The notes under the pieces are model-generated. The model made no database searches. It was given only the letters and a program-made list of their open reading frames with translations, and was not told where the DNA came from. DNA of 63,528 nt, counting the filler, from Octopus bimaculoides (taxonomy: Eukaryota): assembly GCF_001194135.2 (NCBI RefSeq). It is 6 parts of 6 records of this genome, joined end to end, with 100 filler letters (N's around TTAATTAATTAA, not from the genome) between each part and the next. Parts side by side here need not be neighbours in the genome. Positions count along the whole stretch, not along the records: positions 26,276 to 42,157 come from NC_069004.1; 5 more parts are not named here. The stretch is one strand, 5' to 3'. Made by a program: the position numbers and the translations under genes. Of the stretch, positions 26,914 to 40,323 are shown piece by piece (positions within the stretch are counted from its first letter, which is position 1; every line of letters starts with the position of its first letter).

Positions 26914-28081
26914 TATAATATATACATACATGTTATAGGTAATCTTCCAGTTTCGAGAGGTAAAAGAAATAAATAAAAATATTCAAGGGAAATAACTCAA
27001 CGACTTACCAGTATTAATATTTTTTTTTATGATAAGTTTAAAATGTCTTTTTCTTTTTACCACATGTAATAAGTCCGCATGGGACTAGACAGTCGTCGCA
27101 GGTAAACTTATTTCTAATAAGTCGACGACTCGCACACCATTCCAACATTCTGTATCTTGAGCTACCGCTTAAATCACAGATTTTCCATTATTCCTCTAAT
27201 ATAAATTCACGAGTGAGGATATCGTTTTCAGCAACAATAAGATGTTGTGCAGCCGGTCTTCCACGAGGAATTTTCGATTTCTCATAAGAAACTATGATAT
27301 TCAATCACGTGTGAGATTCATATATAAACAGTTAACGTCATTCATATCACGTGATTTATTTATAAACAAACTAGTACGGATAATACTGGTAAGACGTTCA
27401 GTTATTTCCCTTGTATTTTATTTACTTTTTTAACCTCCCGAAACTGGAAGATTACCCATGTTATATATATTATATATACACACACGCACACATGTGTATA
27501 TATATATTTATACATATGTGAATAAAAAATAAAAATAACAAAATATTAAAAAAAAGGTTTTGTATGATCGTGTATAGAGGAATATATTACTTAAAAGAGT
27601 TCCAACTCTGTTTTTTATGTTTTATTCATATTCTTATAAAATTAATGCGGGATATAGAATATGGAATATATAATATNNNNNNNNNNAAATATATAAGGAC
27701 TAATACACTTTCATGCCTCATGGCATTCATCAAGGTCCTGTCTGACAGATGTGCAGCATCTAAGCAGGATTTGTTCAAGAATTTGTGAATGTGTATCTAT
27801 TTTCCTGGAAGTTATGAGGCAACAAAGTCGTGAGGGTGAGGTACATATCTGTAGTTATGGTGGAAGTTTTATCATCCATAGAAAAGAATAGGGAAATATT
27901 TTCCCCAAAATTGTTATTATTTTCAGTTCAATATAATTACTGTATTCTTGAAGAAAATATCTTTTACCAATGCCGTTCTATATTTCCACATTTATACAAT
28001 TACCATGATCAGACAAGTGGAACACAATTCTATTATTTAAATACATTACTACAGCATTAAATCAAACTTCTTTCAACTTAC

Positions 28082-28420
28082 CTTTAGCAGATGTAAACAA
28101 TGAATCAATGTGTTATGCGNNNNNNNNNNNNNNNNNNNNNNNNNNNNNNNNNNNNNNNNNNNNNNNNNNNNNNNNNNNNNNNNNNNNNNNNNNNNNNNNN
28201 NNNNNNNNNNNNNNNNNNNNNNNNNNNNNNNNNNNNNNNNNNNNNNNNNNNNNNNNNNNNNNNNNNNNNNNNATGAGATTGACCAAGGTTTCAATCCTCA
28301 GTGACGTTGAGTTCCTAACAAGCTCAACAATAAAATCGTGAGTGAAGCTGGCTTAATGTCTCCAGCCGCACTTTCGGTCTCAAATATACCGAACTCAATG
28401 GTAACGTTCCCTTGGATATG
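28082..28420 (-). other. Putative non-coding 5' exon/promoter module A, copy 1 (donor AAG|GTAAGT at 28082/28081)
   Basis: Paralogue of 37642-37900 with a consensus donor; exon status is inferred. Confidence 0.5.
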
Positions 28421-28774
28421 TCATAAGGTCACAAGGGGACGTTGAATATTTCAAGAGGTACGAAATATTTCCAACAAATTATTTTAATCTCTAAAATATG
28501 AATAGAACATGGCAGTTTAATAGACGCAAATTCTGACAATAAACCGCTGAGCAAACCTAGCTTCTATTTCGTGAATGAAATGTTTTTCGCTGCTCCTTCC
28601 GATTTTTCTTTTTGACAAACTTAGGTTGGTTGCAAATTTTAGGTGAAAGAATATACTCACCAACAAAAGTTTAATAAGCACTGCTTGGAGATAGAATTCA
28701 GAGTGACACAATATTTCATAAATATTTACGTTTTAGTCTGTCTCAATGTTTATGATCTTTTATTTTCTAGATTT

Positions 28775-28910
28775 CATCATCGTCGTTTAACGTCCGCTTT
28801 CCATGCTAGCATGGGTTGGACGATTTGACTGACTGGAGAAAACAGATGGCTACACCAGGCTCCAATTTGATTTGACAGAGTTTCTACAGCAGGGTGCTCT
28901 TCCTAACGCC
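28775..28910 (-). mobile_element. Short RTE 3' end
   Basis: catcatcgtcgtttaacgtccgctttccatgctagcatgggttgg..., as at 15655 and 17172. Confidence 0.85.
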
Positions 28911-29009
28911 ATATATATAAAAAGAACATGACTTTCCTCCTGGGTGAATACATTTACAATTAGTAAAAACTTTTCCCATGAGAATTATTTACCACTAATA
29001 TAAGAGCAT

Positions 29010-29275
29010 GGAGGCACATAACCTAATGGTTAGAGCAGCGAACTCATGATCAAGAGATTGCAGGTTCGAATCAGAGCAGGTGATGTGTATGTTTATGAGC
29101 AAAACACCTAAGCAGAAGGTAGGGGCAAACTTCTGCAGACTCTCTCACCACAACTTTCTCTGACTCCTTCCTCCTGCAACTAGCAGCTCACCTGTAACAG
29201 ACTGGCATCCTGTCTAAGTGGGGAAACTATACGCCAATGAAACCAAGCATGGCTCAAGAAGGAACAAACAACAAC
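29010..29275 (+). mobile_element. SINE family C with 13-bp TSD
   Basis: A-box-like taacctaatgg and B box ggttcgaatc; TSD aatataagagcat (28997-29009) / aatataacagcat (29276-29288). Confidence 0.85.
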
Positions 29276-29884
29276 AATATAACAGCATCATGGTTTTTAT
29301 TTTGTAAAAATGTTTCAGATCAGTTGAGTTATTTCTATCCATACGAGAATGACTTACCACTGATATTGGAGTGAAATGGTTTCTTGCCTGTACAATCATA
29401 CCTGTGAGTAGTTAACAAAAAGGAAAAAAGCTTTACTTTATGTCTTAAACAAGTCTTATGTATGGTTTGCTTTAGGGAAAATGGTTTTTNNNNNNNNNNN
29501 NNNNNNNNNNNNNNNNNNNNNNNNNNNNNNNNNNNNNNNNNNNNNNNNNNNNNNNNNNNNNNNNNNNNNNNNNNNNNNNNNNNNNNNNNATATCTTTAAT
29601 GTCAATGTCTCAGATAGCCTGAAATGAGAGAGAAATAGTTTAAGGTATTAAAAATGCAGAGATTCAATAGTGGAAGTTTATAATTCTATATTGATAAACC
29701 ATAAACGTTTACCCCCAACAAATAAACTTTACATTTTGCTTTACTATTTAAATTACATCTGAAAGCGATACCTTTCCCTATTCTTATATATTCTCGTTCC
29801 AATATAACTACCTACATCCAAGTAAAGCAATTCTATTATTTATATACAGTATTACAGCGTTAAAACAATCGTGTATCAGCTTAC

Positions 29885-37900: not shown

Positions 37901-38899
37901 ACAAATTATTTTAATCTCTAAAATATGAATAAGACGTGGCAGTATTAATAGACGCAAATTCTGATGATAAACCACTGAGCAAACCTACCTTCTCTTTCGT
38001 GAATGAAATATTTTTCCCTGCTCCTTCCGATTTTTTTTTTTTTTTTGACAAACTTAGGTTGAGTGCAAATTTTAGGTGAAAGAACATGCTCACCAAGAAA
38101 TGTTTAATAAGCACTGCTTGGAGATAGAATTAAGAGTGACACAATATTTCATAAATATTATCTCTAAATACTTTTATTTACGTTTAAGCTTGTTATTATT
38201 ATGTTTTTCTCAATGTTTATGATCTTTTATTTTCTAGATTTTTAGTAATAAATATATTTCTTTTCTTTTATTGTACTAATAATATCTACAAGCTACTGTT
38301 TAATTATGACTAACATACCCTTCCATTTATTAAAAAAAAAATCATCATATTACAAGTGGTTGATATTATCTGAGGTAAACTTGATCAGCAGTGGAAGAAG
38401 GAGTTTTGAAACCATAGTAACCAGAATAAGTAGAAGTCACATCTCTTTCCAGCTTTTCTATAAAGCATACTGGTACTAATTATTTCCCAATCAATTGAAT
38501 AGATCTTGTCTTTAATCTTTAAACAACCAAATTAGCTTACTTAGGCTAGTACTAGTTATTTTTTCTCTATCCTCAAATGATTAGCAATCCTTGACAAAAA
38601 GTGAGCTTGCACCAAGGTTCTCCATTTAGGATGATTAGTATTTTTCTCTATGTAACTAAGGTTTTTATTTGGTTTCTGATATGGCTTTTATATTCCTGTT
38701 CTTAAATCTAATGTAACATCTAGGAAGTTTATTGAGTTATGTTCCTCTTCTTTGAATATAGAAAGCCCTATGTTTAAATAATTTCTTCCTATATTTTTCT
38801 ATCTCTAGATTGGAGCGGGTTAAGAAAGGTGAAAAGTGCACCATCCCTATATAGACCACCTACTTTGGAGAAGCCTTTATTTAAGCAGAATAATATATT

Positions 38900-39038
38900 A
38901 CAAAGTGGTTGGCATGAAGAAAGGCATTCAACCATAGAAATCATGCCAAAACAGACATGGAGCACTGGCAGCTCTTCAGCTGCCATCAAACTGTCCAACC
39001 CATGCCAGCATGGAAAACAGATGCTAAATGATGATGAC
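38900..39038 (+). mobile_element. Old RTE 3' end
   Basis: gtggttggcat.a.gaa.ggcatt...ccaacccatgccagcatggaaaacagatgctaaatgatgatgac. Confidence 0.75.
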
Positions 39039-39064
39039 AATGATATACACACAAATACACAACC

Positions 39065-39235
39065 ATGGAACTATGGTTATATGATTAAGAAGTTTGCTTA
39101 CCAACCACATGGTCTCAGTTTCAGTCACACTTTCTGGCATCTTAGCCAAGTGCCTTCTATTATGGCCCAGGGCTGATCAAAGCCCCGTGAGTGAAATTAC
39201 CAGACTGACACAGAGAAACACCCATCGTATATGTG
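39065..39235 (+). mobile_element. SINE family B
   Basis: aagaagtttgcttaccaaccacatggtctcagtttcagtc...caagtgccttctattatggcc..gggctgatcaaagcc..gtgagtg. Confidence 0.7.
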
Positions 39236-39474
39236 TGTGAGGGATTTTTACATTACCTTCATGTACCAATTGTAAATAAAAGAACTGTTCAGGGGTATTT
39301 GTTTCCAGTTCTTTATGTAAAACATGTTTGGGATGTCCATTGTTTGATAGACTGGAAGTTTATTACCCGACTTAGAAACAAGGTGGGGTTGGAGATAAGA
39401 AGGACATCTAATGATTGGAAACTTTGTCGCACCATACACTTATCTGACCTATGCAAGTACAAAAAACTAGATAT

Positions 39475-40323
39475 TAAAAAGAACATGACTTTCCTCCTGG
39501 GTGAATACATTTACAATTAGTAAAAACTTTTCCCATGAGAATTATTTACCATTAATATAAGAGCATGGAGGCACATGGCCTAATGGTTAGAGCAGCGAAC
39601 TCATGATCAAGACATTGCAGGTTCGAATCTCAGAGCACGCGATGTGTATGGTTATGAGCAAAACACCTAAGCAGAAGGTAGGGGCAAACTTCTGCAGACT
39701 CTTTCACCACAACTTTCTCTCACTCTTTCCTCCTGCATCTAGCAGCTCACCTGTGATAGACTGGCGTCCTATCTAGGTGGGGATACTATATGCCAATGAA
39801 ACCAGGCATGGCTCAAGAAGGAACAAACAACAATATAAAAGCATCATGGTTTTTATTTTGTAAAAATGTTTCAGATGAGTTAAGTTATTTCTATCCATAC
39901 GAGAATGACTTGCCACTGATATTGGAGTGAAATGGTTTCTCACCTGCACAATCATACCTGTGAGTAGTTAAGGTATTTCCATGAGAGAATAATTTACCAC
40001 AGATATCGTAATTAAATTGATTCAACACTTGTGTGAATATGTTTGTTACTATCAAAGTGAAAACAAAAATGAAAAAAGCTCTACTTCATGTCTTAAACAA
40101 GTCATATGTATGGTTTGCTTTAGGGAATATGGTTTTTGTGGCTGGCTGCCTTACATATCACCATCAATTTCACAGTATATTGGATGTCTTTTACTTTGGA
40201 GCCAGCACTAGAGAGGCTGTCATGTTGCTGGCAACTTTTGAGTGCTGATGTATCTGTCCGTTTGTCACTCACTTCACAAAGGACGTTTTTGAGTTGATGA
40301 GTTATTTATTACAGATATCACTG
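39475..40323 (-). pseudogene. Decayed zinc-finger repeats after the ZNF-B stop codon, interrupted by a SINE
   Basis: Minus frames give [38 protein letters not shown] (about 40010-39895) and tgtattcacccaggaggaaagtcatgt (HTGEKPY-like DNA) near 39490. Confidence 0.8.
39567..39831 (+). mobile_element. SINE family C with 13-bp TSD
   Basis: A box tggcctaatgg and B box ggttcgaatc; TSD aatataagagcat (39554-39566) / aatataaaagcat (39832-39844). Confidence 0.88.

Follow-up and report, generated by a model that had tools for sequence, protein, structure and literature searches.

Related spacer copies in a probable tandem array of one-gene C2H2 zinc-finger units in Octopus bimaculoides

Zinc-finger exons at the locus

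We analysed a 63,528-nucleotide (nt) stretch of DNA from Octopus bimaculoides (RefSeq assembly GCF_001194135.2), in which six genomic parts are joined end to end and which we call the window. Our subject is a group of C2H2 zinc-finger (ZNF) genes in the part that spans positions 26276–42157 (hereafter, the piece), which lies on chromosome CM046624.1 (36.17 Mb) of GCA_001194135.2, a 2015 Illumina shotgun assembly that was later re-scaffolded with Hi-C (PMC9068888). The original prediction for this piece, made from the window alone, was that a cassette of two ZNF genes had been duplicated and that a further gene should follow the second copy. Our analysis indicates instead that the repeat unit is one gene and that the repeated block is its spacer, of which the locus holds at least three young copies and one old one. 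The locus as fetched (L001) agrees with the window at 11,834 of 11,834 overlapping bases and reaches 10 kb further on the right, where we give extended (ext) positions, equal to 52151 minus the L001 position; adding 8,287,332 to a window position gives the position on the chromosome. On the right the piece stops at 42157, where a 2452-N assembly gap begins inside the 36-Mb chromosome, and this ‘contig edge’ marks no biological end.

Three finger exons are seen, each an open reading frame (ORF) without internal stops in which the fingers repeat with a period of 84 nt. R1 (40324–42150, minus strand; ZNF-B in the original prediction) is an intact ORF of 608 amino acids (aa) with 20 fingers and the acceptor tag|AAGTATG at the piece edge, and its exact product is annotated in GCA_001194135.2 at 8317656–8339482. 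R2 (34918–36294, minus strand; formerly ZNF-A) is an intact 458-aa ORF with 15 fingers (14 stretches of Pfam zf-C2H2) behind the acceptor ccttacag|AAGTATG, and R0 (L001 1604–4480), outside the window to the right of the piece, has 958 aa and 31 fingers. Matches to Pfam zf-C2H2 and zf-H2C2_2 cover 14–31 stretches per ORF (E-values 1e-76 to 1e-250), which places all three among the poly-C2H2 proteins; Pfam found in them no domain other than the C2H2 type, and no KRAB or SCAN effector domain. Decayed fingers follow each stop codon.

R0 and R1 are 95–97% identical in corresponding segments, similar to the spacers described below, whereas R2 is only 73–77% identical to R0 or R1; the coding exon and the spacer downstream of it were thus duplicated together. 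Despite their identity, R0 and R1 differ by 11 fingers (31 and 20), and a difference of this size between such close relatives indicates that finger number changed fast after duplication. Over the same stretches we obtained a pS of 0.072 and a pN of 0.030 (ratio 0.42).

One public gene range (L001 1604..11849) runs from the start codon of R0 to 22 nt beyond the stop codon of R1 and carries the 958-aa R0 product, and R1 is listed separately beside it as a 608-aa product of its own. The range could be a merged gene model or a read-through transcript. It is also the only hint for a highly improbable reading in which the 5′ exon of the spacer, besides being the first exon of the gene downstream, would act as a splice bridge that links successive finger exons in read-through transcripts, so that the array would be partly one transcription unit with alternative coding exons. 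For R2 there is no exact annotated record, whether for the full 458 aa or for the 431 aa that begin at Met28, and it may be unannotated or modelled differently; R0 and R1 have no entry in the clustered protein collection. Protein searches with R2 and R1 returned mostly vertebrate zinc-finger proteins, at 30–59% identity, and a search with the R1 N terminus yielded nothing but short Octopus ZNFs, at most 69% identical, none of them on CM046624.1.

Three young spacer copies

The young spacer copies, L, M and C, all lie on the same strand. L occupies 27775–29489, with its intron continuing to 26276; M occupies 37356–40137; and C (L001 4612–7503, ext 44648–47539) lies about 2.5 kb to the right of the piece. 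As in a tandem array, C and M each sit between two finger exons, C between R0 and R1 and M between R1 and R2. This third copy, by separating R0 from R1, identifies the block as the ordinary spacer of a one-gene repeat unit. The spacer would comprise the 3′ flank of one gene with an old short interspersed element (SINE), the upstream region, the 5′ exon of the next gene and the start of its intron.

Self-comparison bore out the original observation that L reproduces M. On the same strand and in collinear order, 27775–28119 matches 37356–37679, 28273–28774 matches 37720–38241, 28913–29415 matches 39471–39971 and 29414–29489 matches 40062–40137 (BLAST E-values 1e-27 to 0), with 95.0% identity over 1313 aligned bases. 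The paralogous duplication within a ZNF cluster that had been proposed is also genuine; the block carries a decayed-finger 3′ flank together with a 5′ exon whose donor is conserved. In L, the 3′ flank of a finger exon (28913–29489, minus strand) contains decayed finger units at 28909–29006 and 29271–29415, split by the SINE and recognized by blastn against the finger consensus and by tblastn at 29338–29430; the corresponding flank of R1 (39471–40323, minus strand) has decayed fingers and a SINE at 39567–39831. The right end of L is homologous to a point 187 bp (M) or about 130 bp (C) downstream of the stop codons. The promoter-side upstream region of L (28273–28774, minus strand) matches both 37720–38241 and ext 46309–46720.

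Identity is nearly the same for every pair (L–M 95.0%, L–C 95.5%, M–C 96.0%), and of 1199 sites aligned in all three copies, 33 carry a substitution private to L, 25 to M and 21 to C. These near-star distances do not fit the earlier view of L as the twin of M. To judge from three structural features, L groups with C: its intron continues like that of C past the breakpoint, both carry one and the same retroelement fragment, and the two agree in how the 5′ exon ends and in the first bases of the intron. The visible start of the L intron (26276–28081, minus strand) is collinear with that of C, with 26276–26646 matching ext 44648–45015 (97.6%), 27463–27676 matching 45040–45255 and 27687–27980 matching 45304–45576, interrupted by a private 816-bp insertion (26647–27462) and a 10-N gap (27677–27686). 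This homology runs about 1.5 kb beyond the 27775/37356 breakpoint, up to the piece edge at 26276. Left of 27775 the L intron has no match to M, and nothing in L matches 36537–37355, the part of the R2 intron (36295–37642, minus strand) that is specific to copy M.

Each copy has also changed on its own, by +21 bp (27897–27917), −90 bp and +816 bp in L, by +1229 bp and −20 bp in M, and in C by −113 bp, with TGACA microhomology, and by a 574-bp foldback element in place of 20 bp. The 90 bp missing from L, with the deletion junction at 29415, are 39972–40061 of M, as had been noted.

These comparisons bear directly on the two-gene cassette of the original prediction, in which R1, M and R2 were duplicated as a block, making L the twin of M, followed by an R2 paralogue. 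The collinearity of L and M over about 1.3 kb at 95.0% is what such an event would produce, and the position of L beyond R2 could be accounted for by duplication of a larger block. Moreover, a 113-bp stretch is common to L and M and absent from C, but with its TGACA flanks this difference is most simply a deletion in C. L is no nearer to M than to C, its intron follows C and not M across the whole visible 1.5 kb past the breakpoint, and the retroelement fragment that it has in common with C is absent from the site in M. Because the same spacer also stands between R0 and R1, a one-gene unit suffices, and we consider duplication of a two-gene cassette very unlikely.

Putative 5′ exon and old spacer copy

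The block contains a putative 5′ untranslated exon. In L its 3′ part lies at 28082–28119 (minus strand) and its 5′ part falls in the gap at 28120–28272; the minus-strand donor reads ...CTGCTAAAG|GTAAGT, with its G at 28081, where it had been predicted. The putative 5′ untranslated exon of R2 (37643–37700, minus strand) ends in ...CTGCCGATG|GTAAGT. Exon end and first intron bases read CTGCTAAAG|GTAAGTTG in L and C, compared with CTGCCGATG|GTAAGTTT in M. The donor GTAAGT is conserved in four of four copies, including the old one at 80% identity, and the acceptors are conserved too. In M the exon ends in CCGATG, and its terminal ATG does not share the frame of the main ORF. Hence the upstream exon is in all likelihood not translated, and the whole protein would be encoded by the ORF.

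The exon ends in ATG in both M (37643–37651) and the old copy (29885–29893), and in AAG in L (28082–28090) and C. If spliced, the exon-terminal ATG of M and the old copy would open an upstream ORF of 6 codons, which would overlap the start codon of the main ORF.

The old, diverged spacer copy (29667–30400, minus strand) has a 5′-exon-like segment of its own, with a donor at 29884 and a conserved core at 29805–29944. Against the three young copies it shows 60–68% identity overall and 74–81% at the exon and donor (29805–29944) and at 30038–30091. Such islands of conservation argue that the 5′ exon and the upstream core are functional. The old copy stands directly to the right of a 100-N gap and is oriented so as to drive an exon within that gap.

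Insertions within the spacers

A SINE with a body of about 265 bp is present in L (29010–29275, plus strand), M (39567–39831) and C. It has A-box-like (TGGCCTAATGGTTAGAGC) and B-box-like (GGTTCGAATC) motifs and an (ACAA)n tail, and in L is bounded by 13-bp target-site duplications (TSDs) at 28997–29009 and 29276–29288. The 13-mer AATATAAGAGCAT occurs at 28997 and 39554, with a one-mismatch copy at 29276 and 39832; a search of L for exact direct repeats of at least 11 bp returned none, and the TSD emerged only when one mismatch was allowed. The element splits a decayed finger unit such that finger-consensus positions overlap across it, as expected of a TSD. Its presence in C as well as in L and M upholds the claim that this insertion is older than the duplication. 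By its motifs the SINE may be tRNA-derived; ARAGORN and Rfam gave no tRNA for its head or elsewhere on the piece, and no Rfam family reached its gathering score. Several miRNA-like Rfam hits (mir-297, mir-466 and others; 30944–31137, 32461–32536, 27452–27523) were below that score and are artefacts of AT and CA microsatellites, and six inverted repeats (I1–I6) around 30579–30981 are artefacts of an N run.

Between the SINE and the 5′ exon, L carries the end of a 5′-truncated retroelement with an (ATG)n tail (28775–28912, minus strand; 138 bp), and the same fragment occupies the same site in C (ext 46718–46873). The fragment is absent from the homologous site in M, which has there a different, CTAGAT-flanked private insertion of 1229 bp with an A-rich right end (38242–39470, plus strand). 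This accounts for the roughly 1.2 kb that had been reported as absent from L and replaced by an ‘RTE’ end. Further copies of the retroelement family are at 32664–32812 and 38904–39066, and ORFs in the 1229-bp insertion and in the repeat at 32.5 kb gave no Pfam domain.

The two retroelement insertions entered the paralogous copies at the same nucleotide, after CTAGAT (28774/28775 and 38241/38242), which may be an endonuclease hot spot. The private 574-bp foldback element of C (L001 6002–6575, ext 45577–46149) has terminal inverted repeats and resembles a miniature inverted-repeat transposable element. The 816-bp insertion of L is partly palindromic and has a 40-bp core in common with that foldback element. 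A dispersed repeat of about 370 bp occurs four times within 6 kb (26282–26649, 30427–30609, 31124–31456 and 32384–32482), once inverted, at 68–83% identity.

With several retroelement pieces inside the block and related fragments recurring in the piece, one could suppose that the block itself is, or travels within, a transposable element and that its copies arose by transposition. Within 26 kb, however, the block shows neither terminal repeats nor a TSD of its own, and it ends in a decayed finger array on one side and in an intron on the other. Every copy has the same orientation and is in register with the finger exons, and the elements inside the block are separate nested insertions with their own duplications. 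Transposition of the block is hardly credible on these grounds.

Assembly gaps and predicted genes

Two of the gaps in L preserve collinearity with the paralogues, in which 48 bp correspond to 27677–27686 and 40 bp to 28120–28272. The 100-N gap at 29490–29589, where L ends and where a hidden or lost finger exon is expected, is not collinear: the sequence on its left matches 40137, but what comes after 40137 in the two paralogues has no match in the sequence on its right. We suspect a scaffold join. Of the other gaps, 30612–30943 lies within an AT microsatellite and 36331–36536 within the R2 intron, where 36 bp separate it from the acceptor. None of the gaps breaks into a coding sequence. An assembly gap stands upstream of the acceptor of every finger exon, by 36 nt in R2 (36331–36536), 7 nt in R1 (L001 7542–9993) and 198 nt in R0 (L001 631–1405).

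The left end of L and the contig break in C fall at the same (GATA)n/(CA)n tract, and in C a gap and then the R1 exon come next. Such breaks in the array are systematic and repeat-induced. The C intron continues about 2.5 kb beyond the part that is visible in L, mostly as gap, and only then reaches the next exon; the visible part of L would accordingly not be expected to contain one. Since homology reaches both contig ends of L, finger exons are expected on either side, one in or beyond the 100-N gap and the other left of 26276, and on this pattern we think it rather likely that both exist. The originally predicted gene downstream of the 28081 donor is therefore a fair expectation, but not as a paralogue of ZNF-A (R2): with an intron of the C type, the downstream gene should resemble R0 and R1, that is, the ZNF-B type.

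The same evidence allows L to be read as a dead relic, a partial spacer copy with no finger exon on either side and hence no third or fourth gene. The visible flanks of L are without finger coding sequence, what stands to the right of the 100-N gap has no relation to the paralogues, and L has the most private changes (33), in addition to its private 90-bp deletion, which includes one decayed finger unit. Against this, the homology of L to C does not fade and ends only at the L contig ends, 26276 and 29489; with the longer, mostly gapped C intron as guide, no exon would be expected in the visible part, and both contigs break at one tract. We regard the relic as unlikely.

The quality of the assembly raises another question, namely whether L could represent C or M as an unmerged haplotype, or could be a small scaffold that Hi-C put in the wrong place. 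Gaps, one of them exactly 100 N, bound the three short contigs that make up L, in an assembly built from short-read shotgun data and Hi-C, and L and C break at the same homologous position. Yet L differs from C and M by 4.5–5% and by indels of 21, 90, 113, 574 and 816 bp, beyond the allelic range: for octopus, a heterozygosity lower than the 1.03% of cuttlefish has been reported (PMC13218726). Misplacement would alter the location of L and not its status as a separate copy, although the position could still be wrong. An assembly artefact is accordingly quite unlikely as the origin of L.

A probable one-gene array and a proposed order of events

The piece is probably part of a minus-strand, head-to-tail array of C2H2 genes in one-gene units, in which the block is the spacer and genes are to be expected on both sides of L. 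A gene of this array would begin with a short untranslated exon, followed by an intron between one and several kilobases long, one coding exon with all the fingers, and a 3′ flank of decayed fingers.

The shared and private features can be placed in a plausible order. The SINE would have inserted into a decayed finger first. Tandem duplication of one gene, with a breakpoint 287 bp into the intron (37356), would then have given the arrangement R0–C–R1–M–R2, after which the retroelement fragment would have inserted in C. A segment containing C would have been copied again to form L, and private insertions and deletions would have accrued in each copy.

Several observations weigh against this reading. 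When the old copy serves as the outgroup, L and C have 4 shared-derived sites, L and M have 3, and M and C have 7, counts that are uninformative on the branching order of L, M and C. In the 3′ flank the closest pair is M and C, which are nearly identical (private changes: L 18, M 8, C 3); rapid successive duplication with gene conversion between the neighbours M and C is a possible explanation. L does not adjoin C but comes after R2 and a 5-kb spacer, which calls for a non-adjacent duplication or a scaffolding error. The 5′ exon and its splicing are predicted from sequence. Lastly, no finger coding sequence is visible in 26276–28900, as the original prediction stated for the region left of the L donor, or in 29590–34780, and both neighbouring genes remain predictions.

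At this locus the assembly probably lacks one or two members of the array. In this short-read assembly, young ZNF units are partly concealed in gaps, and with hidden members and no annotated product on record for R2, ZNF counts and cluster maps drawn from it are likely to be underestimates. The ordered markers (a SINE in all copies, a retroelement fragment in two, and private insertions) could be used to date the local burst, given a long-read assembly. The significance of these results is mostly limited to this locus.

Comparison with known gene clusters

Vertebrate KRAB zinc-finger clusters, such as those on human chromosome 19, have grown through segmental duplication in tandem, in the course of which fingers were gained and lost. 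They resemble the octopus array in having all fingers in one 3′ exon, in growing by local duplication, in changing finger number fast and in having decayed fingers beyond the stop codon. The octopus array differs in that it has no KRAB or SCAN effector domain and in that its upstream exon is apparently non-coding. As the vertebrate proteins are only 40–57% identical, the two expansions are independent. Octopus protocadherin arrays (PMC9068888) are alike in their growth by tandem whole single-gene units rather than by exon sharing; they belong to a different gene family, and at our locus a public gene model covers two adjacent genes, which raises the question of read-through.

Closest are the C2H2 clusters of coleoid cephalopods, which as here, and in the same species, consist of poly-C2H2 genes only, arranged head to tail, with young lineage-specific paralogues among SINEs and other repeats. 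Expanded clusters of this kind in coleoids are said to have been reported by Albertin et al. in 2015. At chromosome scale, tandem C2H2 clusters in octopus have been described by Albertin et al. 2022 (PMC9068888), and in the phylogeny of a 2025 study of C2H2 expansion the largest octopus C2H2 cluster holds only O. bimaculoides sequences (PMC12513265). Our locus shows no difference in kind: it is a typical young tandem expansion inside an octopus C2H2 cluster, a form of clustered expansion that is already established, to which it adds a reconstruction at base level, with a one-gene unit, a breakpoint at 37356, a shared SINE and private insertions.

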